A stretch of 63,839 nt of DNA. It comes from Dicyema japonicum. Lineage: Eukaryota > Animalia > Dicyemida. Below the pieces are notes generated by a model that saw only the letters and a program-made list of their open reading frames with translations, did no database searches and was not told the DNA's origin. The stretch is from the NCBI GenBank assembly GCA_011109175.1, contig RDEW01000087.1, positions 62,162-126,000 of the forward strand, read 5' to 3'. The translations under genes and the position numbers were made by a program. Below, piece by piece: positions 4,086 through 52,900 of the stretch. Each line of letters starts with the position of its first letter. The first letter of the stretch is position 1.

Positions 4086-4089
4086 AAAG

Positions 4090-5001: not shown

Positions 5002-5538
5002 ACTTCAAAAAGAGTTAAACCGATAACTTGGAGATTTAAAAACACTGCATTTTTAACTGCCAATATAATAGTAACATATATGAGGGATAATCTAGTTTGT
5101 ATTTTTCTTTAATATTAGACTATGAAATTTATTTTTTAATAAGGAAAATTCTTATTTACAAAGATATCGTGAATATGGCGAAATTATTCTAGAATTAAAA
5201 GCGATAAATATTAATATACTTGTACTGTTAATATTTGTCCCAGCGTCTAATGACAAAATTTACCTTGACAGGATATTACTTTATATTAGTTATCATAATA
5301 ATTCATTCTTAGATCGTTTTGGTGATATGATGATATTTGAAAAACAATTGATTGATAAACATTCTTTTTATTATTGTCAAATTATTTTTAAAAAGTTTAC
5401 TTCTCATATTTTTCTCGATATTTCTTGTTTAAGAATTAAAATATTCAATAGTGAAGAAAATATTAGATTTTTCCTCATTGGTTATTTATTTATATATTTT
5501 AGGGTCATTTTGCATAAATTTCACTAGTGAAACAACAT
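5002..5538 (+). pseudogene. Surface-protein family copy 1 (end of exon 1 to start of exon 3), truncated and frameshifted
   Basis: KPITWRFKNTAFLTANIIVTYMRDNL, 24-nt intron, exon 2 ...FYYCQIIFKKF..ISCL..., 22-nt intron, then G(V)ILHKF/FCINFTSETT; closely similar to 7205-8209. Confidence 0.8.
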
Positions 5539-5572
5539 TTTTTTCATATATTTTTAAAAATGCTTTACCCAT

Positions 5573-5785
5573 AGTTTTAATAATGCAGAAAATAGAAACC
5601 TGTCAATAAATGAAGACTGCTAATACATTAAAAAAAAACAAATTATAAGATGTAAATTAAATGAAATGAACAAAAACTAAAAAATAATTATAATAAATAT
5701 GTACTATTTTAGGACAATTTCATCTTTGAAATACGACAAATAAAACATTGTTCTATTTTTTGTCCTAAATAGGACAATTTCGCCC
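5573..5785. mobile_element. Right end of the MULE-like element seen complete at 37215-39328
   Basis: Matches about 38993-39328 and ends ...aggacaatttcgccc, followed by the same flank aactaatta. Confidence 0.6.
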
Positions 5786-6235
5786 AACTAATTAAACTTC
5801 CTCATCATTCAGCAGGTTTCAAATTTCATTTATTTTAATTACAATTTTTTGGCTGTTTGTCGTTACCTCAAATGAGGATAGAATATGATTGGTTAAATAT
5901 AATAGATTTAAAAGGAGTATTAAAAATATAATTAATCTAAGTTTTACTTTATGGAATATGTCTAATTATAATAATTTATATCCACATGCTTATTATTATT
6001 AAGCACTCTTACCCTCACATTGTAATGACAAAACATGTTCATATCGAAGAACTAGTTATCTTATTCCACGTTCATCTGTCATATGCAATCTCTCATTGTC
6101 TATCACATCCTCTCAGTATCTCAGGCTTTTCCCGATCATTGAAGGTAACCGTCAAAGGCTATTTGGAGGGTAATGCTCGGTCGATCATAAAATCGTGGTA
6201 CTTCAGGCGAAGTAATTAATGGTTGTCTGTATGTT
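5786..6235. repeat. Dispersed module B (also 21735-22185 and 39329-39630)
   Basis: cctcatcat.cagcaggtt...gtcgttacct...ctagttatcttattccacgttcatctgtcat is shared by three loci. Confidence 0.85.
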
Positions 6236-6339
6236 ATTATAATTTTATATTAATATTAGAAAATGAAGTTTATGTATAATAAGGAAAATTAATATTACTG
6301 TCATTGTGTTATGTATAGGTTATTGACTAACACTAATTA

Positions 6340-6830
6340 AGCAAAAACTGACATTGTGGAAATCAAAAGAATGAAAAGCAGATCGAGTGAAACATGGCGA
6401 AAACCAAACTTGGCTCTTTACTTGGAGACAGTCAAGATTTTGCCAGATGAAAAGCCTTCGCTTGGGTAACAATAAACAAGTTGAAGAAAGAGTGGATTGG
6501 CAAACGACGATCCTTATCATCACTTCGCTTGAGACTGTATGAAGTCTTTGTCAAGCCGATTCTAATTTACAATTCATCGACCTGGGGAACGTCCAAAACC
6601 GAATAACTTGGACTAGACACTTACCATCGAAGACAACTTAGATCCCTACTGGACTAAACTGGCCAGCAAGATTGAATAAAAGTAATCGCTGTACAAGAAA
6701 TGTTGCACGGGTCCACTGTGTCTCGAAATTTCTGATATGCGCTGGAGGCTATTTGGACATATCTTGCGTATAAACTTAAGTTCTCCAGCAAACATTGCAA
6801 TGGAGGATTACTTCATGTGACAGGACCGTG
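6340..6830 (+). mobile_element. RTE-like LINE 3' fragment
   Basis: Frameshifted LLGDSQDF..KAFA..TINKLKKEW and ...PANIAMEDYF motifs. Confidence 0.6.
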
Positions 6831-7204
6831 TTTTCAGGAAATTATAACTATTATAATTTTACCTTTTGCTTATAATAATAATGCTAAAGCATTTTAATTT
6901 AATCACAAATTTTTAAATAAATGGATTGCCGCATTTCCAATGAGTTTCTTTGCATAATATCGTTGATTTCCATGAAGACTTTTTATATCTCACTAGTTTT
7001 CTTCAAGAATGTTACTCATTCTTGTATTTAATTTACTACAATAAAGTGATTAATTACAAAAAATAATAAATTTTAGAAAATTTTAATTAAATTAAATTTT
7101 AATAATATTTATTAAATTATGTATTTATATAAATTATTTATCATTCATAAAATATATAAAAATAAATATAAATCCCATTGATGAACTTTATAATCACAAG
7201 TTTG

Positions 7205-8209
7205 TTATATTAAATTTTTAGCAATTGTGCTGTCCTTAAGTATTATAGCAGTTGTTAACACTTTTACTATTAAAATATCAAATGCGACCGTTCCAACGTG
7301 GAAAATAATTATACATGACAAGTTATCCCTGTTATTTTCCGGAATCATTAACTTGAGACTTTTAATTTCAGTTCTAGTAATATTTGGAGTTATCACTTGA
7401 GTTGACACAGTTTTAATTTTAGTTTTAGTAATATCTGGAAAAACTGTTGTTTCACTAGTGATTTAATTTCAGTTATAATAATATTTGGAGTTATCACTTG
7501 AGTTGACACAGTTTTAATTTTAGTTCTAGTAATATCTGGAAAAACTGTTGTTTCACTAGTGAAATTTATGCAAAATGAACCTAAAATATATAAATAAAGA
7601 ACCAATTGGGTAAAATCTAATATTTTTTTCACTATTGAATATTTTAATTCTTAAACAAGAAATATTGAGAAAAATATGAGAAGTAAACTTTTTAAAAATA
7701 AGTTGACAATAATAAAAAGAATGTTTATCAATCAATTGTTTATCAATTATCATCATATCATCAAAACGATCTAAGAATGAATTATTATGATAACCAATAT
7801 AAAGTAATATCCTGTCAAAGTAAATTTGGTCATTAGACGCTGGGACAAATATTAACTGTACAAATATATTAATATCTTTCGCTACTAATTCTACAACAAT
7901 ATCGCCATTTTCTCGAAATCTTTGTAAAAACGAATTTTCCTTATTAAAAATAAATTTCATAGTCTAATATAAAAGAAAAATACAAACTAGATTATCCCTC
8001 ATATATGTTACTATAATATTGGCAGTTAGAAATGCAGTGTTTTTATATCTCCAAGTTATCGGTTTAACTCTTTTTGAAGTTGTATGAGGGCATACATATC
8101 CATAATAGTTTGAATGCTCATGGTCGAAATTAGTATAAACCATTTGATCTAGAATTACAGGAGTTATTAAAATAATAAATAATTCATATGCACATATAAA
8201 TAGGGTCAT
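7205..8209 (-). CDS. Surface-protein family copy 2, the most complete: signal peptide, beta-rich ectodomain, Thr-rich stalk, hydrophobic C-terminus; frameshifted by a 101-nt duplication as assembled
   Basis: ATG 8209; introns 7964-7987 (24 nt) and 7581-7602 (22 nt) join MTLFICAYELFIILITPVILDQM...CPH...ITW...DNL|TMKFIFNKENS...FYYCQ...ISCL...PIG|SFCINFTSETTVFPDITRTKIKTVSTQVITPN in frame. A repeat with period 101 (7361/7462) shifts the frame; without it the ORF reaches the stop at 7205. Confidence 0.7.
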
Positions 8210-8644
8210 TTATAGGTCATTATTTATTTAAATTATTTTATAATTATTAAATTATTTTTAATTAAATCAAATTTATTAATAATATCTCAAATGATTGATT
8301 AATATGTCTGAATTTAGAGACACTTTATTAAACCAACCTAAAAAGTTACTATTTGAAATTAACAACCATCCTCGTCTATTGTTTAATTGACCCTTCTTCC
8401 TATCTACATGCTCTGTCTTTTATACTCCAATGTAATTCTTTCTAGTGTTCTTTTTAAAAAGTGAAGTGTAGGTATTCTCGGAGATTACATCTTGATTTTG
8501 ATCTTGTTGTTTTTCTAAAACAAATTGCACCTTAGAGTAACAATTTACTCGCAATTAAAGAAGTCTTACAAAATTACACTGTCCATATACGAATGTTATC
8601 AGTAAATTGCTGATTTGTCTCAGGCATAATAACGGACTTTTTTT

Positions 8645-9273
8645 AAAGACCAAAGGTTTCCCCTCTTCGAATGGGAAAATTGTGATCCCGTCGGGACGTT
8701 TTCCGTCTCCTCTGTCAACACCAACAGGTTCTAGTATGGCTGGGTATCCCGAGACTCCAGGGCTCGCTTGACAATTCCGTTGATCGCCTTGTGTCTTGGG
8801 AATCGTCCTGAACTCCTTCGACAAGAGAGGGCATGGAGTCCATAACAATCGACGGTTGCGCCACATCGGCATTTGTTGGTCCGGCAAATCTCCAGTCCAA
8901 GTCTGGTGGAGATGCCGATGCGGACAGTATTGTCGTCAAGATGGGTCCCGACACTGCCAACTGGGAGTGCATTGATCCATGCGCCACTCGATTCGCATCT
9001 TCCAGTGACTAGACATGCACGTCTGTGTTGGTTTGATTGGTTCAGACGTCTCTCATATTTATCCTCGCAGATGGTCCTGTAACGATCTTTTTGCTCAGGC
9101 ATCATCCCTTCAAATGCTCCATCTCTGTGATTTCAGATGATTCTTTTTGGAGTTAAAGAATCATCCTGACCAGCAGTCGGCTGGAGCCCAAAGAGGATAG
9201 ATAAGCAGGGCAAGCCAGATCTTTCGTTGAAGGGATTCCCAGTCCGCCCAGACTAACGGGTAGGGTCGCTTGG
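8645..9273 (-). mobile_element. CRE-like (RLE-type) non-LTR element, C-terminal zinc knuckle and restriction-like endonuclease
   Basis: QATLPVSLGGLGIPS, CRCGATVDCYGLHALSC..SSGRFPRH, LEPVGVDRGDGKRPDGITIFP..GKPLV. Confidence 0.85.
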
Positions 9274-10064
9274 TAGACATTCCTCACGTAATCGTCAAAA
9301 TTGACATTAAAAATGCCTTCAACTCGATACGACGTGATACAATTCTGGAGGATTGCTTCATATACTACCCATCAGTGTACAGCTATATTCATAGTTCGTA
9401 CGGAAAACCATCCAGTCTGGTACATGGCCTATATTACATTCCATCGTCTTCTGGAGTCCAACAAGGAGACCCACTGGGGCCCGGCTTGTTCAGCCTGGGA
9501 ATTGCCCGTATCACAGGATACTGCTCCACTCCTCTGAGAGTATGGTATTTGGATGATTGCACCATGGGCGGCCATCCGAAGGATGTACTAGATTGTTTAA
9601 AAAGTCTGATAGTACAATTGGAATCCCTATGCCTAACTCTAAACACCAATAAGTGAAGTAACCAATTTTGGATTTCCACAGTCTGAATGGGATTTGATCC
9701 TTGGTATGTTCAGAGAGATCATTCCGAAAGCCACAGAAACCAAATCAGAAGAACTGGAAATACTTGGATGCCCTCTTACTGATGCTGGAATCAGTAACAC
9801 TCTAAGAACAAAAGAACATCAACTAAAAACAACATTCAGACGTCTGGAGATGCTGGACTCACACACCTCCCTATTCCTCCTGAGAAACGCCTTATCAGCA
9901 CAGAAACCGAACTACGTTCTTCGGGGGGCACCCTGCTACTTGAAAATGCAACAGCTCGATGCTATCGATTCCCTCTTCCGGAGTACTATTGAACGTATCA
10001 CAAATGTGAAATTTGACGACCAAGGGTGGGACCAAGCGACCCTACCCGTTAGTCTGGGAGGACT
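9272..10064 (+). mobile_element. CRE-like RT, inverted relative to its own C-terminal part
   Basis: KIDIKNAFNSIRRD, GVQQGDPLGP.LF, VWYLDD, LFLLRN, QATLPVSLGGL. Confidence 0.85.
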
Positions 10065-10420
10065 TTTTGTTCTGCGGGCCAAATCAATAATTGAATTGGT
10101 TCGCGGGCCACAAATTTTTTTAAAGAAAATTAAACTTTATTAACTAAATTAATGTGAGCATTGAATCTGCTTTTCTTTACTATTCTTTAAAAAAAACACT
10201 CAGATTTGATGACGACGTACGTAAGAGTTGCATAAGATGTTCATCAGTTAATTGGTTGCGAAATTTAGTTTTATCCATGTGATCTGCTGAAACAGAGCTT
10301 CACAAACATACGTTGATCCAAAAACAGATGCATTTTCATACGCATTCATAACCAAATTTGAATATTTTAAATTTAAAATTCTACTCCAAAATTTTAATAG
10401 TTGACATTCTTAAATATTGC
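10065..10420 (-). mobile_element. hAT transposase C-terminal (dimerization) fragment and subterminal region
   Basis: FGSTYVCEALF/IKTKFRNQLTDEHLMQLLRT; gcgggcca subterminal motifs at 10071-10103. Confidence 0.7.
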
Positions 10421-10499
10421 GATGAGGTCTATACCCGACTTTAACACGTTTTTCAGAAATCACAAAAAATATTAATGATATTAATTGTGACCGTTGAGA

Positions 10500-10700
10500 A
10501 AATGTTTAGGCTGAGTAAAATCCGCAAAAATCGATTTTGCCATTGCAACGCTCTACTCACAGTACTTCGAACCATGCATTTCATATGCGTGTGCTTTATG
10601 GGGACCACTGGCCTCTTATACGAACATCCAGAAAATCTCCGCAACCCAGACAGGGCCTTCAAACTAACCGAGAGATAGTATACAGGGAATATATTAGACA
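10500..10700 (+). mobile_element. I/Jockey-group LINE fragment
   Basis: LYSQYFEPCISYACALWGPLASYTNIQKI, homologous to the 2.2-2.4 kb element. Confidence 0.6.
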
Positions 10701-10959
10701 ATAGGGGAATCCTATCCGTTCAAAAAAAGACGGTAATTGGCTATACAAAAGTCTCCCATTTGTTATGGACCAAATGTGGTGTTTCTTTGAAGCTTATTTA
10801 TTTAGAAGACAGTCTCCGTCGATGGAATTTCCACTTTGTTTAGACTTTGCACCCCCTTGATGAACTAGCCCCAGTACTTTTAGAAAAACACTCTCAACGA
10901 GTATAATACTTCTCACACGACTATTATAATATTATTTTCACTTCTTCTAACCACCCCTT

Positions 10960-12270
10960 TGTCCTCCTATACGACTATTCTACTCACGTGTATGTAATAT
11001 GTATTACGCGACCAATTACTCATCATGATATTTTCTCCATATCCCAACCCTCTAATTTATTTAGTCTATCAAGCAACAACTGGCTATTTGTCCTTTTTCT
11101 TCTCTCACAATTAGGAAGAGCCTTAAATCATTATTCAGCACAGCACTGACGTCGCTCTCTCCAGGAGACTCTCTGTTTTCAGTATTCAAAATTTCTCTTT
11201 ATTCTCTCAACCCTGAGATTATCCAAAGAGCCGTGATCTATTTCTTCGGAATCACTTTGTTTAGTTTTTGTCAGTTAACAGTGGTCTTTGTAATTAATTT
11301 AATTAATATAAGAAATTTTTATTTTTTGAATGGTTTAAATCTAATAATTTAAAAAAAACCAACACGCTATAATAATTTTTTTGTTAGTAAGAAGTTTGTT
11401 TTTTTGACGTTCGAGAGAAAGAAAGAAATTATTTTCTTGATGATGGTGTATATCTGACATTAAGAAGACATCGAATTTTACAAGTATGGAATTTTTGGAC
11501 GGATAATGAAGTTAAAAAAAGAAAGGTTTAATAAATTTAAGGCTGTGATTCAATCTTGCGGAGGAAGGATGTTAAGAAAGGTTGTGGAAAAATGATTTAA
11601 CAGTTTTCAAAGTTGTAGACAGGGTTGTCAGAAAAAAATGCCCTGGCACAATTATAAAAACTCGTAGAGATGCTCTGAATGAGCGCATGGATATATCTAT
11701 TATGTAGCAAGCCAAAGCTATTACCGAGCCACAGACGTTACCGTTGACAGCTGTCATCTACTGTTATTTTAATCAAAATTTATTCAATACTATAATTGTT
11801 TCTATTTTTATAAATTATTATATTCCGATACAAAGATTAATTCTACGATAATATTAATAATTATTATTAAATTATTTTATCAAAAATTTACTCAAATTTT
11901 AGTCTGGCTGACTATTAATTGAATATAAAATAATAATCCACGCTAAAAAATTTCGTTACATTGACCTGATGCCTATTACAAAGACTTTGTCCTCCTATAC
12001 GACTATTCTACTCACGTGCATGTAATATGTATTACGCGACCAATTACTCATCATGATATTTTCTCCATATCCCAACCCTCTAATCTATTTAGTCTATCAT
12101 GCAACAACTGGATATTTGTCCCTTTTCTTCTCCCTCAATTAGGAAGAGCCTTAAATCCATTATTCAGCACAGCACTGACGTCCCTTTCTCCAGGAGACTC
12201 TCTGCTACCAGTATTCAAAATTTCTCTTCATTCTCTCAACCCTGAAACCATCCAAAGAGCGTTCTCTCTC
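10960..12270. repeat. Dispersed pair of about 290-bp repeats (10960-11250 and 11987-12270)
   Basis: tttgtcctcctatacgactattctactcacgtg...ccaaagagc occurs twice with scattered substitutions; origin unassigned. Confidence 0.85.
11400..11710 (+). pseudogene. Possible BRCT-domain (MDC1/PAXIP1-like C-terminal) remnant
   Basis: With two frameshifts: FDVREKERNY...RRHRILQVWNFW...KFKAVIQSCGGRML, resembling the tandem-BRCT D.E.EKNF..RAR..LL.G+.+Y...+I..CGG..L pattern. Confidence 0.35.
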
Positions 12271-12344
12271 ATATATGTCTTGAGAGGGTTTGGAATGAGA
12301 AGACGTAAATTTATAGATACATGTGTTTAGCTGTACAAATAAGG

Positions 12345-12913
12345 CGGAGAAAGCATTCGTCTGTAAAGACGTATCGGGGACGGAATATCTGTGCTAGTTG
12401 ATGTCTTCTGAATTGAGGATGATTTCTTTCAAAGCGAAAATACCTTCGATTGGAAGGAGTTACTCATCATTCCCTGCTATGACGCTAGTTTTGTTAAAGG
12501 ACTCAATTCAACCTTGGTCGTTTTTCCAAATTAGTCATTTAAGCTTTTATGTTTTTTTATATTTCAAAATTGTGAAAGATTTTGTACTACATTGCTCGGT
12601 GTATTACATATTACTGTATAAAGTAATCNCGGAGAAAGCATTCGTCTGTAAAGACGTATCGGGGACGGAATATCTGTGCTAGTTGATGTCTTCTGAATTG
12701 AGGATGATTTCTTTCGAAGCGAAAATACCTTCGATTGGAAGGAGTTACTCATCATTCCCTGCTATGACGCTAGTTTTGTTAAAGGACTCAATTCAACCTT
12801 GGTCGTTTTTCCAAATTAGTCATTTAAGCTTTTATGTTTTTTTATATTTCAAAATTGTGAAAGATTTTGTACTACATTGCTCGGTGTATTACATATTACT
12901 GTATAAAGTAATC
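12345..12913. repeat. About 284-bp tandem duplicate joined by a single N (12629); probable scaffolding overlap
   Basis: Two near-identical copies flank the N and differ at about 2 positions. Confidence 0.9.
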
Positions 12914-12924
12914 ACTTATTCTTA

Positions 12925-13050
12925 TTATTATTTATTAACCCCGGATTCACCGAGAAAGAAGTTAAATTAACCAACTAATTAAGTGCATCCAGTTTCCACT
13001 TCTACAGGAACAGAGTCCATCCTGAATCAGCATAAAGGGTAAGACGTCCA
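12925..13050 (-). mobile_element. Isolated LINE/SINE 3' tail
   Basis: Homologous to the tail at 23005-23060 (..cacttaattag...ggggttaataaataata). Confidence 0.55.
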
Positions 13051-13299
13051 TTACATGCAGTTGTGGAAACCCCTCAAGTGGAGTGGGGAAAAGCCAGTGA
13101 TCCTTTTTCATGCCGGCCTGGCACTAGGCGTCACCTAGATAGGTGGATCACATGACGCCACTCTGATAGGAAGAGAGAGGAGGAACAGACAGCAAGCAGA
13201 AAAGTTAAACCAATTAAAAACGCAGCAACACATGGCGCCACGCGGCAAATCAATAAAGTAACTTCTAATAGAGTATGTCCACCACTATTGGAGGGATGA

Positions 13300-15800
13300 T
13301 CCTAGATTGGAGTTTGACTTTGCCTCCTATCACTTTCGTTGCTTGTGTGGTCATTCTAGAATTTATATGTATTGGAGTCTATTGAATACACTTACTTTTG
13401 TCCAACACCCCCAAATATGTACGAGTGGATCAGTTCTGCCTACTCTGGCGAAATTCTCCCTAAGTTAATCTACCTTGATGGGGTTTGTGAGAACACCAAA
13501 CTGGCAGTGCAAGTATGTGTGGAATATGATGAAACAGCTTGTCTCGGTTATAGCTGATAGGAGATTCTCTTCAGAGATGCACCTTCAAGTAAAATCTGTG
13601 TTTGGAAACCGCCTTCGATTTTGTTAGTTGAATTTGGTTAGCATAGCTGTGGAAGCTACAATGAAGAAGAAGGAAGATAAGGAACTCAATTTAATGGAGA
13701 GGGTAGTAGTGGCCATGCATAAACTGAGCATACAAAATTAAACAAAAAGATATAACTTCTGTTGACACTGAGACTCTTCCTCAATGTGTTTATATTCCCT
13801 GTCTTTATGCCATCAATGTGTTTATATTCGCTGTTTTCATGCCATTCTGTTGTTACTCACATAATCAAAAACTTATCTCCTGTCTTCTGATTACCAAATG
13901 TCATTGTTTCTATTATTTTATTATATACGTTCAAAAAAGCAAGTGACAAAAGTGAAGACCTTAGTCCGCCATTTCCATCTGACATCCGAATAATCGATTT
14001 GGCACAAATGTTGAGTAGCAATGACCAGGTTATTATGCTATCAATAGAACACAACGATGACTTGATGTAGATTATCTTTTCATTTAAGCAACTACGAGTC
14101 ATTAGAGGAGGATTTGGGGGAGATGTTAATTCGAATGTACGCAATTCTGTGACAAGGTTGAATTCATTTTAGAGCAATAATGAATTATCGGGACAGTCAA
14201 TTTTACCTGAGGATTTCAAAGAATTCAAAGTCTCGTCTTAATACTACTTTAAATTGATTTCGTACCACAGACTCGAAACAGGGAACGTTATTTCACTTTA
14301 GGGCAATAATGAATTATCGGGACAGTCAATTTTACCTGAGGATTTCAAAGAATTCAAAGTCTCGTCTTAATACTACTTTAAATTGATTTCGTACCACAGA
14401 CTCGAAACAGGGAACGTTATACCTGAATATTCAAGAATGTTGTTTGGATAAGTACTGAATGGACATTTCATGACATTACATCGAGATTATGGCATAACTA
14501 CCTTAGATTGTTAGTCATATATGTTACGCAGGGTAATACTCGATGTACTATGGCTGTGTTGCTTGGAATGTTTGCGAATAGGTTAATTGTCGATTATTTG
14601 TAGGTTTGGAACTGGTGATATGGCTGTACTTCCTTGTTGAATGTGCATAGTACAGCACTTTTTAGTGGGAGTAGTACGATTGAGTTTCCACTCACATTTC
14701 AATCAGCAGCATTTCTTAGCATTGTAATGTACACTTTAGAGCGTGTAATGCTTTCCTAGTACAGCACTCTTTAGTGGGAGTAGTACGATTGAGTTTCCAC
14801 TCACATTTCAATCAGCAGCATTTCTTAGCATTGTAATGTACACTTTAGAGCGTGTAATGCTTTCCTTTTGAATTCTCTACTTAATGGGATTGGTTATAAT
14901 GGGGGTTATTTTAGCTGTGTTTTCTTCCCCCCCATAAAATACTGTGGCTTTGGAGGCATACTCACTTTGCTGGACTCTCATTTGGAATGATCTCTATGAG
15001 AGTTGTTATTTATCTGATGAATATAGAAAGAGGATGACTGCAGTGATGAGGTTGCTTAAATAACCCAGATTTTGTTGTATTTGATGGAGGGTAGCAGAAA
15101 GTCCCGTATAGTTTGACTGATTTTGACAATTAGTACTCTCTGTGTGGAAGTGTTCAGAACAAACCCAGTCATATTCTCAGAGTTATTATTGTACTCATTT
15201 TAGGACGGTCGGAGAATAAACAGTGATGTCTCCTCATTTGCAGCAACAGTGGCCCTGGGACTTTTATATTTCAATACTTCTAATAGGTCTGGTTTTCTTT
15301 ACTACAGATTCATTATTGAGAGTCTTTCCTTACCGAATGGAATTTTGGGCTAGTCTGCTAATAAACCTGGGGATTCTCACTCTTAGAGTATTATTTTGGT
15401 TTACCAAGTCTATCCCTCTGTTTGGTTGACTGGGAACGATTGGACTGCACAGGGGACTGTTTGTTGTCCACTTTACCTTTATATGTAATTCATGAGGTAA
15501 TGCCTAATGTTTACTGGATGCCATAGAACACTTGATAGTATGCGTTTGGATAATTGGGAGTTGAGGTTGTTGAGTGGTTATATGACAGGGAGTGTTTTAT
15601 GGCTCATTTGGGGGATGGGCATTAGCAGTGGGCTTTAAACTGGTTAGCAGTAATGACCGTGATGCTATGGAATTTATTGTTTGCAGTTAACTCAGTTTAG
15701 TTGGGCTTTTTCTACAATTTTTTGGAATACAGTGAATCCCCCATCCAAGAGAATACATTTTGTGTCTCATTATGTCTGCTTCATTGGTAGATTTGATTAT
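13300..15800 (-). mobile_element. Very old degenerate LINE (APE-RT type), with two tandem duplications (periods about 128 and 108 nt)
   Basis: Only faint RT/post-RT motif traces; duplicates at 14174/14302 and 14649/14757 are directly visible. Confidence 0.3.
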
Positions 15801-16090
15801 TATATTTTAGATTATGTGTGAGAGTGGTTGTGTGACAGGCCTTGCAACTTCTCGTTATCTGAGAAGCAGGTTTGTGAGTGATGATAAGTACAAATATGTC
15901 AACTATGGTTCACATATGTCTGTGGCAAAGTACAATGATCTCCTCTTCTTGCGAATTCCCTGTAAAAGGACAGTAATTGTCGTATGTGATAGCGTCCGGG
16001 CTGTTGATACTGTCCGGGTTGATAAGACAAATTTATCACATGAAAACATTAACAACCACTAAGTTTTGTCTCAAGAGAAACAAAATAGAC

Positions 16091-16600
16091 AAAAAACAAA
16101 AAATTTTATTTTGAGTCAATAAAGCGATTAAGCAAGAAAAGGGTCGAAAATAGAAGAGGTCGAAGGATCGGTCTCTTGTTCACTCAAAAAACAAAAAATT
16201 TTATTTTGAGTCAATAAAGCGATTAAACATAAAGGGTCGAAAATAGAAGAGGACGAAGGATCGGTCCCTTGTTCATTCAAAAAACAAAAAAATTTATTTT
16301 GAGTCAATAAAGCGATTAAACAAAAAAGGGTCGAAAATAGAAGAGGTCGAAGGATCGGTCCCTTGTTCATTCAAAAAACAAAAAAATTTATTTTGAGTCA
16401 ATAAAGCGATTAAACTGGAAAGGGTCGAAAATAGAAGAGGTCGAAGGATCGGTCCCTTGTTCATTCAAAAAACAAAAAATTTTATTTTGAGTCAATAAAG
16501 CGATTAAACACAAAAGGGTCAAAAATAGAAGAGGTCGAAGGATCGGTCCCTTGTTCACTCAAAAAACAAAAAAATTTATTTTGAGTAAATAAAGCGATTA
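16091..16600. repeat. Tandem array of about 5.4 x 92-95-bp units next to the left TIR
   Basis: Unit aaaaaacaaaaaattttattttgagtcaataaagcgatta...gaaggatcggtcccttgttcattc. Confidence 0.95.
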
Positions 16601-16698
16601 GCGTGAAAATGGTTATTTGAGTGTTATATAATATTTTTTTTAATATTTTTAATTTCTTTTAAAAAATTTAAAATTTCACGCTTCATTTTAATTTTGTT

Positions 16699-17997
16699 AT
16701 GCTTTCTACATTCAGCATTAATACACCTGATGAATTAAAGAAAATTATGAATTATCTCGAATATAAACTGTATCCTGATGGATTTAATGAAAATCAAAAG
16801 CGGACATTACGCAAAAGATGTTAGAATTTAAAACTGTTAAATGGAGAATTATTTGTGGATTTAATGGAAATCTTCGTACTGTTATATGTTCATTTCAAGA
16901 AGCAAGAATTAATTTAATGTTTCGCTAAGGAACATTCTATTTGACATCCTGGTGTTTCCAAGATGTGCAAATTAATTTGCGAAAAGTACATTGGCATCAA
17001 TCAAAAAATTATTCGCCATTTTGTATCTACTTGTGATTCCTGTAACCATTTCAACAGTCTAAAGACTTGTGAAGATATTCAAATGATTACTGTTTCACAT
17101 AAATTCGAAAGATTTATGGCTGATTGTATAGATCTTCGTAGATATTCTTCTTATAATAAAGAATATAAATGGATTCTTAATATAATTGACTGTTACTCAA
17201 AATTCGCTTGGTCATTTTCTTTAATTAGTAAAACATCTCAAAATATTAAAAATTCTTTTGAAGACATGTTTTTATCAGTTGGGCCACCTGAAACATTGCA
17301 CACGGACAATGGAAAAAAGTTTTGTAACTCTGAAGTTTCAGCATTATTATGTGATTGGGGGATAACGGCGATTCATGGTAGACCAATACATCCTCAATCA
17401 CAAGGGCAGGTGGAACGCTATAATAAAACGCTAAAACGTTGGTTAGCGAAAACTCTATTTCAATCTGAATCTAATAATTGGATTGACATATTGAAAACTA
17501 CTGTTTATAAATATAACATTTCTATTCATCGTGCTACTGGAAAGTCACCTTTCAAGTTAGCTTTATGAATTTTATTTTTAGACTATTATTTGGTACTTCG
17601 GGATTCAATATTGTTTTTGGGTCTGATAATAAAGTGATCGAATTACCAGCCCAAAGAACTGAACATTTTTCAGATGATGAAATTCAAGAAAATTGTTCTC
17701 TTTCTGAAATCCAATTACATCACCAAACATCAGAACATTTTGAAAATTATAAAAGAAAAGTAAAAGAAAACGCAAATTAAAATTTTCAAACAAATCATGT
17801 CAAAATAGGCGATACTGTTTTCATTAAATCAGATTTAGATAACAACCAGAAAACAAAAAAAACATGCCTTGGACAGTTTTTTTGAAAGGGAACATTATGT
17901 TGTTATAGAGGAACTATTACATTTTGTTATCGTTAAGGGAGTTTCCACAGATGAAACAAAAAAAGTTTCAAAATCAAGAATTAAAAAAATTAAGTAG
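16699..17997 (+). pseudogene. Stand-alone DDE integrase (HHCC, D-D35-E, C-terminal SH3-like), disrupted
   Basis: EHSI*HPG..CDSC; MADCID; HTDNG; QSQGQVER with 35 residues between D and E; WID.L..TVYKYN..IHRATGKSPF; KIGDTVFIK. Frameshifts before 16963 and near 17565. Confidence 0.9.
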
Positions 17998-18099
17998 TCT
18001 TTAAATACAGTTTATTTGTATGATAGTAAAAAAGTTTTTGATTTTTTAATATCGTTTTTATATTAAAAGTTGTTAAATTTTTGTTATGATCATTCAATA

Positions 18100-18310
18100 A
18101 CGGTTCCATTTCGGGTCCATATAAAGGTTCCATTGATTCTGTTAGAGCCATTCTTATTCGTTAGCATACGTTCTTTCACTCATATTCAAAGATCTGGCAA
18201 ACTTCACGAATGTGTAGTCACTCGGCCATCCCAAGTGAGTACAATCAAGACAATCTTGAACTCTGCGTGGTGTATCAAACTCCAACTCTTTGGAAAGAAA
18301 CTTTTAGTTA
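18100..18310 (-). mobile_element. RLE-type (R4/NeSL-like) LINE 3' fragment nested in the Ginger-like element
   Basis: KIVLIVLTWDGRVTT...ERTYA, same family as 37500-38330. Confidence 0.55.
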
Positions 18311-22335: not shown

Positions 22336-22399
22336 TCACAGTCATTGTGTTATGTCACAGAAGAGGCAAATATAGGTTATTCACTAACACTAATTAATT

Positions 22400-32800: not shown

Positions 32801-32829
32801 ACCAAAAACTCATTACTCACATTCTGAAC

Positions 32830-33880: not shown

Positions 33881-33887
33881 TACTGAA

Positions 33888-36743: not shown

Positions 36744-37214
36744 TTTTAAAACTTTTCACGGATTCTATATTTTGTCTTTCTCTTTGTTGGTTAGTTTATA
36801 ACAATTATATTCACTATTAAACCAGTAATTTGTGGCAATACAAACAATAAGAAAAGTAACAAAACCAGTCTCTTAATTATGTAAGAAAAGCAGGCGCTAA
36901 ATTAATTTTTCAATTGTAAATCACAGCGACACGATGATAGATAGTACCTAAAACTTTGAGAAATGGTCTTGGGCTCTAAGACGAAGAATGTTTTCATCTC
37001 CTTGTGGAATTTGCAATCGTTCCATATGAGACCAGTCCAAAATGGAGTGTTGGTAAACGATAGTTCATTTATCAACCTCAAATTGAGAGAGCTTGGAAAC
37101 CCCCATTTATCGAGTCGACAGTGGATAATAGCCATATAAATTGATCAAACGTCCAAAACATGATTATCGCTCACCATCCACTATACGAACAAGATAGAGC
37201 TGGAAAACTAATCA

Positions 37215-41419: not shown

Positions 41420-42654
41420 AAGGTTTGAGTATCCCTATGGAGATGCTGTCACTATTGTTGCAAAATTGTCCAAAAATTTTGTCAATGTTAAAGATAGTGA
41501 GGGAATAGTGAAGAAGGTACATTCTAAACGCCTTAAAAATAAAATTATCAATAATTAGTTATTGTTTGATTTGAAATAATTGATTATTTACTTTTTTGAC
41601 AATGATTGACATTGATTTGAGCTGTCAAAGGTAACGTCTGTGGCTCGTGACATATTACGTTAGAAAAATCTTTCCCACTGAGATGTTAATATGTGAATGA
41701 GAAGATGGAACTATTATTAAAAAAATAGAAGAGACTTGGTTAATTTAGATACAAAATAAATGATTTTTTATAAAAGACAATTATTTAATAAAGAAACGAA
41801 TAATTCCGTATGTATTAAATTTCATTAAACATACTCAAATAGCAAAGTTTGATGAGTTGTACCTTTTTAGAAGATTCTATATGGATTTGATCCGTCTTAT
41901 TTTAAAAAATTAAGACAGATAATTCTTGGACATTACCTTCTTTATATCTGACAAATAATACATATTACTATAAGCTATCAAACATGATGAACCAATTAAA
42001 TATAATCACACATAAACTAATAGACAGATGATTCTTGGACATTTCCTTCTTTATATCTGACAAATAATAGATATTACTATAGGCTATAAAACATGGTGAA
42101 CCAATTAACTACAATCATACATAAACTAATCTTATTACTGGACTTCAATATCACCATTCGGCATGAGAGATCAGATTTTTTAGTCAGCATTTCACTTCAA
42201 TTTTTAATAATCCGGATATGTCTAAATTATGTAGTTCCCACGGTCGGAGTGGGACGCGTACTTATTCAGCATCCCATCTAATCATATCCGCCATTGTGAC
42301 AACCCCTTAACTAAGATGGAAGATGCGAGTATGTCAGGTACTATGAATTTTCTTGAGTTTAATAAGTTCCATGACACTTCCCCTAACCTTTAGTTTATCG
42401 ATTCTTATTAGTTCTTAATAGAGTTAAGAAGTTATGATAATTTACAATGTGTTATCACATCAACAATTGACCTGATTAGTAACATAACTCTAAATCATAA
42501 GAAATATTATATTTTGTGAATTCAATTAAAGTCTTTTAAAATTAGAAGTATCATCATTGCAATAAATAATGATGTTACAAAATAACACACGTTGTTCTCT
42601 AATTTGATTTTTTCATCAAAAGTAAGGTAACTATAGATTCCATGAGTAGCATTC

Positions 42655-46670: not shown

Positions 46671-48767
46671 CGAGAATTGTCGCATTAGTTTTGTTATGAG
46701 TTTGTTGGCCCTGTTCTCATGTTATACGACAATTATTAACCAATTCTATTAATCAATGATACACAATCATTATCCATGTTTCTAAAGCTAACGAAGATTC
46801 TATAATTAATTTCATATGTCTTTACTTTCATAGAACAAACTATTACAACTTTTATCAATATTTTAAGAAATGGATCAAAAACCTATTTGGTAGTGCAATA
46901 TGAAAAACAATTGTTTTTGTGTCATTACTGTTGGGTTCAAAACTCAAATACTATTTCTCCCNCTTTTAACAAATGGATCAAAAACCTATTTAGTAATGCA
47001 ATATGAAAAACAATTGTATCTGTGTCTTTACTGTTCGGTTCAAAACTCAAATACTATTTCTCCCCAATTTGCAACTTCTAGCTGAACTTTGACACGTCAC
47101 TCAATTTTCGAGAAAAAATTACAATTAAAATCTCAGTTTTAAGGAATATAATAAATTTAATCCAATTGATAATAGAATTGGAAAACAAAGATGATGTTTT
47201 TTAGAGATCACTTATGAATACATAACCTACTGTATCTTTAACAATTTACCCAAGAAATCTTACCTTTCCACTTCTTAAAATAAAAAATTGCAATCACACT
47301 AAACTATCTCTTCAGAAAATACGGAAAAGGCTTAAAGGAAGAAATACAGTGCTAATAAACAGTTCACGTACGAAAAGTGGAAAGATAAATAAAAAGTTTT
47401 TGTTATTTTCGGATCGTTGATGATGGTGTCATTTGTAAATCCCATGAACATTTAGATGCATGAAATCTTAAACAGGAATTGACAGAACAAGATTCCAACT
47501 ATGAATATTCAGGATTTGGAATTGTTCATTTTAATAATATCAACCTCTTTTACATACATTGATTGTTAACTCTAAATGAGTGAGTTCTTCAGAATATTTC
47601 AACACTTTTTTATGCTTATTTCGTAAAAAAACAGACATGATTAAAGTTACTCTTGGATGTTTAATTTAATTAATTAAATTTGTGACAAGTAAATTTACTC
47701 TTACTAGACGATATTTTAACCAAGAGTGTATTTGACATTTTTGCATTACGGAACTTTGTATATCGAATGTCTTACAAAATTTATCATTTCTGTTACGTAG
47801 ATGAAAAGAATAGAAACGATGAGTTCCATCAATCTTTAAGAAATTAAAATATCGGAGGTACGTTTCCGCATCAACTTTTGACAACTAACAAAATACATCA
47901 ACTTGCCAAAATAAAACTAATACTAATTTTGGTAGTGGAAAGTTAAACCAAAGTTAATAAATCGAGTAATAATAGTAAATTTAAATCCAGTCAGAAATAA
48001 ATACTAATAAACATTATTTTAAAATAAAACGACTTAAAGGAAGACTCAGAACAAATTTTGACAGTCTCTCTTGTATTTTGATCACCTTGAGATTTTCCTT
48101 CCCGAAAGGACAAAATAAATTAATTTCTTCCTGCGACCTTTCCAGTCCCTCTGGCAATTTTCAGAGATACATAATTGATTTGCAAATAAATAATCTACAT
48201 GCTCTTGTAAGTGCCCGAAAGTTCAGCTGTTAATACATTCCGTTCATTTCGATTCCCTTCTGGTCGGTATTTTGACTTCATTAGTTATATCAACATTTGG
48301 GTACCGCTCCCAGAGAAGAATTTTTCTTTCTAAAAAACTCTCCCACACTTCGATCAGTCACGGCATTTTTACTTTTAGTAATCTTCTTTGTAGGATCTCT
48401 TTTTACAACACGTTTAACAACACCACAACCACGCTTATTAACGGGAATTCTTAAAATAGACCCATCTTGCATTTCTGCAGTTTACAAGTCAGCTTCGAAT
48501 AATTTCCAGTTGTTAGACAACTAGATATAATTAAATTATTAATTTTTAAGGTAAAAAAATTAATTAACAATAAAATATTATTGATTAACTATGTCAGCGG
48601 CTGATGACTTTACAGAATAAGCGTTTCCGCGACAACTGCGATCCCAATTCGTTCCTCAGCGAGACCGCTTCCCGCAAAAAAATAATTTATATTGTTTTAT
48701 ATATTTTTACTAAAATATATTATAATGTTTTATAAAATAACCTAAATAAATAAATAATAACCTATAA

Positions 48768-49575
48768 ATGACCCTATCTCTTTGTGGACATGAATTATTA
48801 ATTTTTTTAATAAGTACTGTAATTTTATATCAAATGGTTTATACAAATTTGGACTTTGATCATTTAAACTATTATCCATTTGTATCTCATAATGCAAATT
48901 CAAAATTTATAAACCGATTACTTGGAATATTCATAACAAACCACTTTTAACTTCCAATATAACAGTAACATTTATGAAAGATTATAAAGTCTGTAATTTT
49001 CTATTAATATTGGAATATGAAGTTTATGTTTAATAAGGAAAATTCCAAATTAATTATAATTTCATCAAAAGAAAAAAAATTGTTCTATTTTCATCAGCGA
49101 GAGATATCAATTTAAATTTAACAGTTCGCTTAGCGCCTGATGGCCAATATTAACTTGACAAGATAGAACTTTTTTTGTAATTATAATTTTTTTTTTTTAA
49201 TTTAATTATTCATTTTAGATAATAATAAATATATGATTACAATTGATTGATAATAATCATTTTTATTATTGTCAAATTACTTTTTTTAAAGTTTTCTCGT
49301 ACAATTTCTCTTAATATTTCTTGTTTAGGAACCAAAATAATCAATAATGAAAAAACTATTAAATTTATCCCAATTGGTTAATATTTATATATTTTAGTGC
49401 AATCTTGCATAAATTCCACTAGTAAAACACTTTTTCCAAATATTAATAGAACCAAAATGAATGATAAACCGTCTACTCAAAAAGTGATAACTCGTTATAT
49501 TAAACCATCATATAAACCAGAATGCCATAATATCAGTATTTTGCTTTGTCATTGATATCATTGCTTTGATATTAA
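48768..49575 (+). pseudogene. Surface-protein family copy, divergent, multiple frameshifts
   Basis: MTLSLCGHELLIFLISTVILYQMVYTNLD; MKFMFNKENS; QY*LDKIE; FYYCQ; both tiny introns at the conserved positions. Confidence 0.75.
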
Positions 49576-50334
49576 TAATCACAGTCATTGTGTTATGTTA
49601 CAGAAGAGGCAAATATAGGTTATTCACTAAGACTAATTAATTGTATTTATATGGGGGTTTGTTTTATTTGATATTAATGATTATAAGTATTCTCTAATAA
49701 ATAATGTGATTAACCATTATTGATTAAGAAAAATTAATAATTTCATTTTTTGAGTTAACACGTTAAATAAATTATTCTACTGGATGCAAGTTTTAGAGAA
49801 TTTTTATTTTGGTTAAGCAGATTTAATAAGAATTCGAGTTTTTTGGGTTTAATGATATATAGTTGACCTCATTATAAATATAAGTGATTTTGAGTAATTT
49901 ATCAATAAGTTTCTACCAACTACTAACTGTTTAGAACTCGAGGAATAATAATCCACAAATCAATCCATGCTGCACAGGCGTGCTCGATACTAAGTAGAAC
50001 AAATTGTTTGTATAGAAGCTCTAACGATAAGCGATAAGATACTCGAGAGTGAGTGAAAACCAAAGACCCATTAGGTATAATAGAACTTGGATCGTGTCGC
50101 ATCCTCGATTCGAAGATGTTTCACTGTGACTACGAGATCATCCGCATACGATAAAGAATTGTGTTTTTGGTGTTTGAGGATGGGAGGTCACTGAAGACCA
50201 TGTTGAAGAGCATTGTTGATAACTGTGATCCTTGTGGAAGTCCATTTGGAAGGATTTCTACTCTACATCCATTGATACCAAGAACCGTCTCTCGTTTGAT
50301 TTTCGGTTATTCAGGAGGAGGACAGACCTATCGT

Positions 50335-52335
50335 ACTTAGTAGATCAATATTACTTAAATTTTAATTTTAAAACTTTTCACGGAGTCTATTTTGTTTTTC
50401 TCTTTGTTGGTAAGCTTATAACAATTATATTCACTATTAAACCAGTGATTTGAGGCAATAAAAACAATAAGTAAAGGTCGACAAATTAGTCACTCAATTA
50501 TGTAAGAAAAGCAGGCGCTAAATTAATTATACACATGCAAATCACAATGACACAAAAATGGATAGTACCTAGGACTTTGAGAAATGCACATGAAAAAGGT
50601 TAGGAGGATATTAAAAATATGGGATTATTGAACATATCCTTTTCATAATAAATAGTGCTGAATTTCATNACAATAAGTAAAGGTCTACAAAACCAGTCTC
50701 TTAATTATGTAAGAAAAGCAAGTGCTAAATTAATTTTTCACATGTAAATCACAGTGACACGATGATAGATAGTACCTAAAACATCGAGAAATGGTCATGT
50801 ATAAAGTTAGGAGGCTATTAAAAATATGGGATTATTGAACATATCTTTTTCACAATAAATAGTGCTGTATTTCATTCTGTCACTTTGGAAATTCTCGATT
50901 TCAAGAACAAGACCGTCTTGGGCCCTAAGACTCTTGTTGTCTTGAAACCACCGAACTGCTCGAGGAATGTTTTTATTCCGTTGGGGAATTTGCTATCGTT
51001 CCATATGAGACACACTAATTAATTCGATTTATATGAGGGTTTGGTTTATTTGATATTAATGATTATAAGTCTATTAAATAATGTGATTAACCATTATTGA
51101 TTAAAAAAAGTTCAATAATTTCATTTTTGAGTTAACACGTTAAATAAATTATTCTACTGGATGCAAGTTTTAGAGAATTTTTATTTTGGTTAAGCAGATT
51201 TAATAAGAATTGACTTGGCATTGATTGCATGATTGCTAATTCGAGTTTTTTTGTGTTTTAATGACATATATAGTTGACCTATTATAAATATGTGATTTTG
51301 ATCAGTCAAATTCTACCAACTACTAACTGTTTAGAACACGTGGAATTATAATCTACAAATCACCTTATATAAAATTTTTTGGCGAAAAGCGAGTGTCCGA
51401 CCATAGCTTATTAACTGTACATTGTATACTATTGAATTTGCACTTAACAAAGATTGTGTCCATCTTCGAAGAAGACTATGTCAATTTCGTATTATGTTAG
51501 AGAATTGTTTGGTTCATCAATTAAACAAACCAAAACTAACGAGAAATCATATTTTGTTAAAATTAAATAATTTAAAAGACATGATTAATCTTTATGGATA
51601 CTCCATGTAGGATTTTTATTTTATTAACCCCGAAATCACGAGAAAGATAATAAAATTTATCGTCTAATTAAGTGATCCCGGTATCCATCACAGTCCTTTT
51701 CATCCAGTCCTTTTCATGCGGTTTATCTACACAATGGGGAAGGTTTCTTCTCATATCTTGGGCAGGCGTCCATATATAGTCTGTTGTCCGGCCCGAGGGG
51801 ATTTTCAAGGGACTTTGCCATCTTAAGGAAGTTCTTATGACATTCCGTAAGGTATTCCATTATTGGGGGGATGTTTAGTATTCTCCGTAGCAACAAAGTG
51901 GACATCTTTTTCGACTATATAGAAGTATTCTGAGACATCGGTTTTGTAAAACTTCCAGCTTGTTCTGTGCCGATAGTGATAAGCACAGGCATACTCGATA
52001 CTAGGTAGAACAAATTGTTTGTATAGAAGCTCTAACGATGGGCGGGAAGATACTCGAGAGTGAGTGAAAGCCAAAGACCCATCAGGTTTAGTAGATCTTG
52101 CATGGACCGTGTCGCCTCTTCGATTCTTCAATGTTTCACTGCGACCACGAGATCATCCGCATACGATAAAGAATTGTGTTTTTAATGTTTGGGGATGGGA
52201 GGTCAATGAGGAACATGTTGAAGAGCATTGTTGATAACGGTGATCTTTATGTACTCCATTTAGAAGGTATCGCGGTTTTGATTTTTGATTGTTTACCATC
52301 ACTTGGCCCATTCGATGTTGAAGTTAGCCAACAAT
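50335..52335. repeat. Paralog of 21140-23660 (family 3' UTR, module A, module C, LINE 3' end), lacking module B
   Basis: Collinear blocks; single N at 50669 with a local duplication. Confidence 0.85.
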
Positions 52336-52349
52336 AACTTGAATTTANT

Positions 52350-52900
52350 TAAATTATCTTTATATTTTACATTTGGCTTAGCGTCTGATGACCAATATCA
52401 CCTTGACAAAATAGATTTTTTTATTCGTAATTATAATTATTCATTTTTAGATAATGATAATTATACGATTACAATTGATAGACATTTGATTGATAATCAT
52501 CATTTTTATTATTGTCAAATTATTTTTAAAAAGTTTCCTCGCAATATTACTTTCAATATTTCTTGTTTAACAACCAAATTATTCATTCATAAATAAAACA
52601 ACTTGTAAATTTATCCAAATGGGTTTTTTATTTATATATTTTAGGACAATCTTGCAAAAATACCACTATTAAAACAACAGTCTTTCCAGACATTACTAAA
52701 ACTAAAACTGTCAACTAAAATAATAACTCCAAATATTATTAGAACTGAAATTATAAATGTGTCAACTAAAGTGCTTACTCCAAATATTACTAGAACTAAA
52801 TTTAAAACCAATTTAACTCCAAAACTGAAAATTAGTAAATCAGCTAATAGAACAGTCATAATCGTCAGTATTAATATTAATTTTAAAACTTTTAATGGGT
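52350..52900 (+). pseudogene. Surface-protein family copy (exon 2 to stalk), begins at the N join 52348
   Basis: ASDDQYHLDKIDFFIRNYNYSFLDNDNYTITIDRHLIDNHHFYYCQIIFKKF..FNISCL; stalk TPNIIRTEI. Confidence 0.75.

Follow-up and report, generated by a model that had tools for sequence, protein, structure and literature searches.

We analysed a window of 63,839 nucleotides (nt) of the Dicyema japonicum contig RDEW01000087.1, the whole stretch of DNA to which all coordinates below refer and to which the copy search and self-comparison were confined, and found one three-exon gene repeated on both strands from 5.0 to 52.9 kb, with eight copies and two further traces. The identical copy set came from self-BLAST, from tblastn with the exon peptides of the second copy, from an nhmmer profile and from a MAFFT alignment, and the copy-versus-copy BLAST E-values range from 1e-9 to 0.0, far past chance. 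The predicted product consists, in order, of a signal peptide, an all-beta ectodomain of ~175 amino acids (aa), a Thr/Ile-rich stalk, a transmembrane helix and a short basic tail. A preliminary description of this DNA had proposed a dispersed, hypervariable family of surface-protein genes. The recovery of one set by four search and alignment methods upholds the family, whose predicted products are type I membrane glycoproteins in which the ectodomain varies and the anchor is conserved.

The most complete copy is copy 2 (copies are numbered by position), which lies on the minus strand at 8209-7205. It comprises exon 1 (8209-7988), intron 1 (7987-7964, 24 nt), exon 2 (7963-7603), intron 2 (7602-7581, 22 nt) and exon 3 (7580-7205), and it starts at the ATG at 8209 (MTLFIC...), not at the nearer ATG at 8187 that had been taken as the start. 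Two conserved introns of 22-25 nt had been described, and both are present: across the family, intron 1 has 24-25 nt and intron 2 has 21-22 nt, both are GT..AG, and their positions are constant wherever they are retained. Excising both introns restores the reading frame, and the start-codon context also lies at a constant place in the copies containing it. Contigs of four sequencing runs, which look like DNA, span both introns without a gap. From the restored frames we infer that both introns are spliced out. Animals with introns this small have been reported only among myxobolid myxozoans and Dicyema japonicum (PMC13644364).

The signal peptide (MTLFIC..) has a hydropathy of 2.3 and the transmembrane helix one of 3.7. 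The ectodomain of copy 2 has Cys residues at 40, 160, 177 and 198, and the motifs first cited for the family (CPH-x10-W, MKFIFNKENS, D-x3-FYYCQ and NISCL) were all found. The stalk is made of Thr/Ile-rich repeats of 17 aa (51 nt), which carry N-x-S/T sequons and number from two to about four units depending on the copy; copy 2 has six sequons. These sequons and the hydropathy peaks of 2.3-3.7 at the signal peptide and transmembrane helix indicate that the family encodes a predicted membrane glycoprotein.

A single shared transmembrane segment and tail had also been described. The segment, IIVSIIIIFIIIIAIAIA, is present in copies 3 and 5, and the family as a whole has two distinct types of transmembrane segment and tail plus an unrelated end in copy 2. 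Type A (...KRFRNRPVEISRSILLKF) occurs in copies 3, 5, 6 and 8 and in the 50.3-kb trace, with YKRF or YMRL at the membrane edge and the conserved end SRSILL(K/N)F. Type B (...RRGKYRLFTKTN) occurs in copies 4 and 7 and in the 6.2-kb trace, with GKYRLF 4-9 residues past the transmembrane segment, followed by TKTN. The 3' end of copy 2 (7205-7355, minus strand) resembles none of the other copies. Higher in guanine-plus-cytosine (GC) content, it codes for a hydrophobic stretch together with a 10-aa tail; it is open for 49 codons (7208-7355; chance about 0.01) and could represent either a third type of anchor or a captured exon.

No copy is whole as assembled: each has a truncation, an internal deletion, a frameshift or a stop. 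This agrees with the preliminary description, and for copy 2 the damage is possibly an assembly artefact. Copy 1 (4984-5571, plus strand) is 93% identical to copy 2 and inverted relative to it. Its exon 1 is truncated on the 5' side at the edge of a high-copy transposable element (TE) and is followed by intron 1 (5095-5118), exon 2 (5119-5480) and intron 2 (5481-5502); its lesions are a 1-nt insertion within the MKFIF codons and another repeat that cuts exon 3 early, at ~5571. Copy 3 (20593-21170, plus strand) has a premature stop in exon 1 and a deletion, with its junction at ~20770, that took out the remainder of exon 1, the whole of intron 1 and the greater part of exon 2. Its intron 2 lies at 20835-20856 and its exon 3 is intact, with stalk repeats, a type A transmembrane segment (peak at residues 59-89 of the exon-3 product), a type A tail and a stop at 21168-21170.

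In copy 4 (22168-22400, plus strand; type B), the last part of exon 1 is followed by intron 1 (22276-22300, 25 nt) and by the beginning of exon 2, which an internal deletion fuses to the end of the transmembrane segment and the tail (..RRGKYRLFTNTN). The 6.2-kb trace (6241-6310, plus strand) likewise has the start of exon 2 (MKFMYNKEN) fused directly to the end of a type B transmembrane segment and tail, and the two share one identical internal deletion. Hence, both are duplicates of an already dead copy.

Copy 5 (36136-36743, plus strand) is truncated on the 5' side in the middle of exon 2, exactly where a 2.2-kb repeated element ends. It has a 12-nt deletion, intron 2 at 36308-36329 and a frameshift early in exon 3, beyond which it is open through about four 51-nt stalk repeats, the type A transmembrane segment and the tail. 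Copy 6 (44047-43375, minus strand) is the most divergent, with 34% aa identity to copy 2 in exon 2; its exon 2 is open for 108 codons, stalk repeats are absent, and its shortened type A transmembrane segment and tail are 81-83% identical to those of copies 3 and 5. Copy 7 (48768-49640, plus strand; type B) is full length, with several stops and frameshifts, an intron 1 acceptor mutated from AG to GG, a stalk without 51-nt repeats, the transmembrane segment ..IIALILIITVIVLCY and the tail RRGKYRLFTKTN. The 50.3-kb trace (50269-50440, plus strand) holds the final type A tail codons only (..SRSILLKF, stop), together with the shared downstream flank. Copy 8 (52345-52840, plus strand) is truncated on the 5' side beside an N at 52348; it has intron 2 at 52623-52644, stops near the end of exon 2, stalk repeats and a deletion that joins the start of the transmembrane segment to the 3' untranslated region.

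The sole lesion of copy 2 is a 101-nt tandem duplicate in exon 3 (7361-7562, minus strand; 2.0 copies, 97% identical), which takes in non-repeat sequence and shifts the frame. Dropping either 101-nt unit leaves copy 2 open for 285 codons. The window contains more than a dozen 2.0-copy tandem duplicates of 96-285 nt whose units match exactly or nearly so, among them those at 301-547, 12331-12913, 14163-14420, 14648-14866, 39028-39284, 41913-42130, 46861-47065, 50464-50875, 53306-53498, 53794-54053, 55141-55404 and 55517-56041. In four, a lone N marks the exact junction (12629, 46962, 50669 and 55780); the units of one of these four share only 92-93% identity. Scaffolding of the assembly used short reads (PMC6736024), and these duplicates look like scaffolding or gap-closing artefacts in which overlapping contig ends were left unmerged. 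Any frameshift inside one of them is suspect in this assembly. The copy 2 duplicate may be an artefact of this kind, so the lack of an intact copy here may be partly an assembly effect. Logan unitigs across the 101-nt duplicate were uninformative because of their short length and because the 51-nt repeats from every copy accumulate at this site.

The open frames argue that the family codes for protein. Given the composition, the chance of the open frame is ~2e-8 for exons 1 and 2 of copy 2 together (194 codons), ~3e-5 for exon 2 of copy 6 (108 codons) and 1e-4 to 1e-5 for the exon-3 frames of copies 3 and 5 (for copy 3, 104 codons and ~1e-4). These frames are far too open for DNA of 25% GC, and on this ground we regard the family as protein-coding. 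The motif CACGTG as a mark of host genes was uninformative, with ~0.2 sites expected at 24% GC and 0 seen. Together, the introns of 21-25 nt, the TE damage and the scaffolding artefacts hide such genes from ordinary annotation.

Selection was measured on non-independent pairs of damaged copies as the ratio (omega) of nonsynonymous (dN) to synonymous (dS) divergence. We found NG86 omega values of 1.4-2.2 in the true frame for most pairs and of 0.5-1.0 in the two wrong frames; the pairs of copies 7 and 8 and of copies 6 and 7 had no such effect. Third codon positions change about half as often as first and second positions (0.35, 0.33 and 0.19 at positions 1, 2 and 3 for copies 1 and 7; P = 5e-4). 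Composition-corrected change, relative to the rate of the shared upstream flank, is 0.86 at position 1, 0.84 at position 2 and 0.55 at position 3; hence, the correction shrinks the effect and keeps it. Divergence peaks in the first half of exon 2 (dN 0.45-0.46, omega 2.3-4.3), compared with a dN of 0.19-0.32 in the other segments, in line with the variable mid-ectodomain that was first described. These patterns suggest diversifying selection on the ectodomain. By domain, omega is about 1 or more over the ectodomain, signal peptide included, and about 0.35 in the transmembrane segment and tail (copies 3 and 6, 0.35 over 33 codons); the near-neutral ratio that the preliminary description held to speak against a surface family is found in the former and not in the latter.

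Values of this kind also bear on another account, in which an orphan gene that once functioned was multiplied by segmental duplication and TE-mediated rearrangement, all copies are decaying neutrally, and the apparent hypervariability is decay. Every copy is defective as assembled, omega is about 1 or more over the ectodomain and signal peptide, and the rate of change at positions 1 and 2 is close to that of the flank. Moreover, the recent pair of copies 3 and 5 has a dN of 0.098 and a dS of 0.100 (omega 0.98), which equals the divergence of 0.12 in the downstream non-coding DNA. However, frames have stayed open despite 25-40% nucleotide divergence (108 codons in copy 6 and 194 in copy 2, with the chances given above), the deficit of third-position change is frame-specific, the transmembrane segment and tail are constrained, and copy 2 may be intact if its 101-nt duplicate is artefactual. 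The divergence of copy 6 is also uneven along the gene: relative to copies 3 and 5, it is 55-63% identical in exons 1 and 2 and 81-83% identical in the transmembrane segment, tail and 3' untranslated region (P = 4e-6 and 8e-4). Since exon 2 of copy 6 is open after ~40% nucleotide divergence, most of the divergence arose in a living gene. We consider a wholly dead family unlikely, though it deserves more weight than any other competing account, and on our reading the head evolves fast, the anchor is constrained and copies turn over by birth and death.

The pattern of copy 6 could be a conversion mosaic, which brings in the proposal, made in the preliminary description, of a variant-surface-antigen repertoire in which one or a few expressed genes are diversified by conversion from a silent, partly defective archive, as in VSG, var or VSP systems. 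Like those and the RIFIN family, the genes here are multi-copy and clustered in repeat-rich DNA in both orientations; many are pseudogenes, and the ectodomain varies while the anchor and tail are conserved. Copy 6 looks mosaic, with its divergent ectodomain and an anchor close to that of copies 3 and 5, and the two tail types are not bound to particular exon-2 subtypes. However, unequal selective constraint along the gene explains the copy 6 pattern equally well, and copies 3 and 5, like copy 4 and the 6.2-kb trace, are plain duplicates of already dead copies. Only about ten copies are seen in the window and each subfamily is low-copy by read depth, whereas VSG, var/PfEMP1, RIFIN and Giardia VSP families comprise tens to thousands of genes with unrelated folds and proven switching, in protists living in vertebrates with adaptive immunity. 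To our knowledge, the cephalopod host has no antibody-based adaptive immunity, so the usual driver of VSG-type switching is removed. We consider an antigen archive quite improbable.

The copies share DNA beyond the gene itself. The upstream flank of copy 2 (8210-8599, minus strand), which a retroelement cuts at ~8600, is 82% identical to the upstream flank of copy 3 (20209-20592), and the downstream flank of copy 3 (21171-21737, plus strand) is shared with copy 5 (36744-37215, about 88-90%) and with the 50.3-kb trace (50319-51011). The duplicated unit therefore takes in at least 360 nt upstream (copies 2 and 3, 82%) and at least 570 nt downstream (copies 3 and 5 and the 50.3-kb trace, 88-92%). 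Hence, the unit is the gene plus its flanks, at least 2 kb. The family grew by ordinary segmental duplication of the gene plus flanks in both orientations, and most local copies were later destroyed by TE insertion, deletion and frameshift; the breakpoints at 4984, 5571 and 36135 coincide with the edges of other repeats.

With a GC content of 34%, the window is AT-rich, and it is littered with TE remnants: pieces of reverse transcriptase lie at 9270-9656 and 40254-40661, an integrase core lies at 16963-17568, and ~6.3-6.8 kb holds a reverse transcriptase tail like that of a long interspersed nuclear element (LINE). The gene might thus be a mobile-element passenger or a TE-encoded, envelope-like membrane protein: its copies sit among reverse transcriptase, integrase and LINE debris, some copy ends match repeat edges at the three breakpoints just given, and copy 4 and the 6.2-kb trace travel with a neighbouring repeat (5787-6238 matches 21729-22177). 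Read depth, measured in four DNA-like runs of one sample, speaks against this: word depth is ~200 over the gene body, compared with 3,000-20,000 over neighbouring TE pieces. In addition, the boundaries differ from copy to copy, self-comparison shows no terminal, direct or inverted repeats flanking the unit, Pfam scans of the gene found no TE domains, and the introns of 21-25 nt are of the host type, like those of a neighbouring DOCK gene. By its low depth and its lack of TE domains and flanking repeats, the unit is not a high-copy TE, and a mobile-element origin is very unlikely.

By sequence, the family resembles nothing known, as was first stated. The exon-2 open reading frame (ORF) gave no match in a word-index protein search (5.8 G), and an exon-2 HMMER profile gave 0 matches among 1.84 G representatives. 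The window's own ORF is missing from those protein collections; hence, these blanks say nothing about paralogues in this genome. Pfam gave nothing for the ectodomain at E<=0.01 or E<=10, with the exon pieces searched apart, which lowers sensitivity; PF01299 and PF21222 in particular were not matched at E<=10 by the exon 1, exon 2 or exon 3 pieces, and exon 3 gave only transmembrane and low-complexity noise (RIFIN, ETRAMP and CD34, E 0.09-0.5). A PDB sequence profile search returned only noise (S100, ZBTB38), and a search of the ESM Atlas by features scored 0.83, the level of shuffled sequences. The D. japonicum genome paper mentions neither the family nor any LAMP (PMC6736024).

Structure prediction points to a LAMP-type fold. 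We modelled exon 2 alone (120 of the ~175 ectodomain residues) from one five-copy alignment, with exon 1 and the start of exon 3 outside the model. The AlphaFold2 model of copy 2 exon 2 is all-beta and weak, with a pLDDT of 50.5. In Foldseek searches, LAMP-3 and LAMP-1 fill its top three places in the PDB, a 'LAMP-2-like luminal domain' comes first among the AlphaFold DB clusters (probability 0.99, TM-score 0.51/0.50, 116 residues aligned) with three more LAMPs in the top 20, and the top 11 matches in Swiss-Prot are all LAMP-1/2/3 or CD68. In the ESM Atlas, the best match is Ac45/VAS1_LD (TM-score 0.61). VIA-align gave a Z of 6.3 for LAMP-3 and 5.5 for LAMP-1, and in a Foldseek-independent search a Z of at least 5 was reached in only six of 48,161 chains, namely LAMP-2, LAMP-3, LAMP-1 (both domains) and V-ATPase Ac45.

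Corroborating these results, a second AlphaFold2 model with copy 6 as the target (34% identical to copy 2) had a pLDDT of 57.4 and matched LAMP-3 in Foldseek with an E-value of 9e-3 and a probability of 1.0. Its top two Atlas matches are PF01299 clusters (TM-score 0.62), and in the wide search its top four are LAMP domains at Z 6.3-7.2, with the next chain, an unrelated one, at 5.7. The register is constant across searches, with exon 2 (model residues 1-114) aligned to LAMP-3 residues 258-369. In this register, exon 1 would supply the N-terminal strands and exon 3 the C-terminal Cys. Cys160 (in FYYCQ) and Cys198 (in SFCINF, at the start of exon 3 and outside the modelled piece) are 38 residues apart. 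The second LAMP disulfide reaches the C-terminal end of the domain, linking the front sheet to the C-terminus (PMC3409847), and from its spacing the Cys160-Cys198 pair is a plausible counterpart. From the models, we consider it fairly likely that the ectodomain head is a LAMP-type beta-prism.

This differs from the Ig-superfamily receptor that had been proposed from the Cys/Trp and FYYC spacing. The motifs C-x12-W and D-x3-FYYC and the all-beta prediction are in line with an Ig domain, and the LAMP domain itself has general features in common with Ig domains (PMC3409847). However, Cys40 and Cys160 are 120 aa apart, compared with about 55-75 for the Cys pair of an Ig domain in a sandwich of 70-110 aa; Ig, V-set and I-set are absent from the Pfam matches even at E<=10; and there is no Ig structure among the matches listed in any fold library for either model. 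The copy 2 ectodomain (exon 2) in AlphaFold and Foldseek instead placed the LAMP/Ac45 beta-prism on top or near the top. We therefore rejected the Ig fold on Cys spacing, profile matches and listed structures, and find an Ig-superfamily receptor hardly credible.

LAMPs and their kin coat endolysosomal membranes as glycoproteins and also reach the cell surface, and their canonical lysosomal targeting motif is G-Y-x-x-hydrophobic at the C-terminus. Defining features of LAMPs are two disulfides that are fully conserved, a luminal domain directly next to the transmembrane helix, one conserved Pro and two conserved Gly in that helix, and a short tail with a targeting signal; the luminal domain is a beta-prism of 150-200 aa (PMC3409847). 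The family here is like the LAMPs (LAMP-1, LAMP-2, LAMP-3/DC-LAMP, CD68 and LAMP5/UNC-46; PF01299, Lamp2-like_luminal) in being predicted as type I, with a signal peptide, an all-beta luminal domain, one transmembrane segment and a short basic tail with a Tyr motif, and in the Cys pair 38 residues apart at the C-terminal end of the domain. LAMPs are also the best structural match of both models in the PDB, AlphaFold DB and ESM Atlas, except for the copy 2 model in the Atlas, where Ac45 is on top. A mucin-like segment is shared with LAMP-3 and CD68; here it forms a stalk between the domain and the membrane, whereas in LAMPs it is N-terminal to the domain. The YxxPhi-type motifs of the tails appear similar to the LAMP targeting motif in kind only, being non-canonical and not at the extreme C-terminus. 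The family also differs in its many clustered, fast-evolving copies, since LAMPs are as a rule conserved and low in number, and in having no detectable sequence similarity to them.

Two other families deserve comparison. The luminal domain of Ac45 is a LAMP-like beta-prism without LAMP sequence similarity (PMC11660900). Ac45/ATP6AP1 (PF05827, VAS1_LD) shares the type I topology and short tail, has a Z of 5.1-5.4 in the wide searches and is the top Atlas match of the copy 2 model (TM-score 0.61); however, this V-ATPase subunit is conserved and single-copy, carries a further luminal domain at its N-terminus, lacks a repeat stalk and ranks below LAMPs in most searches. CD34/podocalyxin-type mucins share the Thr-rich, sequon-rich repeat stalk by a single transmembrane segment and the variable repeat number (2 to about 4 x 51 nt). 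In contrast to theirs, the stalk here is a short one of about 35-90 aa, secondary to a folded domain at the N-terminus, and it has no significant Pfam match.

Several points weigh against a LAMP-type reading. The beta-prism recurs in five libraries with TM-scores up to 0.62, at low model confidence: both models cover exon 2 only and share one five-sequence alignment, and the Z values of 5.5-7.2 are within the range where the tool warns of a mere common arrangement. None of the sequence methods (Pfam, HMMER and PDB profile) ties the family to LAMP. The first LAMP disulfide (Cys274-Cys311 in DC-LAMP) has no counterpart, with no conserved Cys in any copy at the positions expected in copy 2 (~91 and ~128), and Cys40 and Cys177 are specific to the family. 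About 50-90 residues of Thr/Ile-rich repeats part Cys198 from the transmembrane helix, so the domain is not membrane-adjacent. The type A (IIVSIIIIFIIIIAIAIA) and type B (IIALILIITVIVLCY) transmembrane segments have neither Pro nor Gly, and the odd end of copy 2 has one Gly. On the side of selection, omega above 1 is partly a composition effect (GC of 0.17 at third codon positions compared with 0.27-0.31 at positions 1 and 2) and the constraint on the transmembrane segment and tail rests on 33 codons. Also, every copy is broken as assembled, which makes a wholly dead family possible, and the cellular role is pure analogy. Since the first disulfide, the membrane adjacency and the transmembrane Pro and Gly are missing, we do not class the family as a LAMP member; it is at most a divergent LAMP-type variant that would resemble a LAMP-type coat glycoprotein in function.

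On balance, we lean towards a birth-and-death cluster of a lineage-specific gene for a type I glycoprotein of ~285-300 aa, with a LAMP-like head and a LAMP-like coat role. Segments of gene plus flanks duplicated in both orientations, and TE insertion, deletion and frameshift then killed most local copies. In the living copies, the ectodomain would diverge at about the neutral rate or faster while its frame stays open, with the transmembrane segment and tail constrained, as is typical where a conserved anchor carries an exposed domain prone to interactions. The stalk would be N-glycosylated and probably O-glycosylated. By analogy, the protein may serve as a glycocalyx or coat protein on endolysosomal membranes and/or on the outer surface of the endocytic peripheral cells, and not as a switchable antigen archive. 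Dicyemid peripheral cells bathe in host urine and feed by endocytosis (PMC6736024), and a LAMP-like head on a mucin stalk would fit a protective or interactive coat of endocytic membranes.

Dicyemids are among the most reduced animals, and their surface molecules are almost wholly uncharacterised. Should the head be of the LAMP type, the family would be a concrete candidate for the parasite glycocalyx and host interface and another case, like V-ATPase Ac45, of the LAMP beta-prism outliving sequence recognition. A bolder version, which we think unlikely, is a diversifying repertoire of LAMP-fold glycoproteins at the interface with the cephalopod kidney, acting in adhesion, uptake or evasion of innate recognition, with variants produced by duplication and by exchange between paralogues. 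If true, an animal parasite would have re-purposed a lysosomal-coat fold as a variable surface family.

The neighbourhood of the copies holds further repeats. An element of ~2.8 kb occurs twice at 95-96% identity (1055-3870 compared with 28156-28763 plus 33887-36135); its second copy is split by ~5.1 kb (28763-33887), its end truncates copy 5 at 36135, and none of its four scanned ORFs has a Pfam match. The DNA at 4600-4980 (depth about 5,000-20,000) and at 6340-6800 (depth 3,000-6,700, compared with about 200 for unique DNA) belongs to the most abundant repeats of the genome, and the latter reads like the C-terminal part of a reverse transcriptase of the kind without long terminal repeats (non-LTR). 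A 94-nt tandem repeat at 16090-16600 (5.4 copies, 94% identical) adjoins the ORF with the integrase core (rve, E 2e-14) at 16963-17568, and a gap of 574 N at 57068-57641 lies inside an array of 81-nt tandem repeats (array at 56665-57067). The DOCK-family gene occupies 59.3-63.8 kb on the minus strand and runs off the end of the window, with DOCK-C2 at 63327-63695 (E 6e-14) and DHR-2 lobe A at 60677-60889 (E 8e-6); it is split into short ORFs, which candidate GT..AG introns of 21-24 nt could join.

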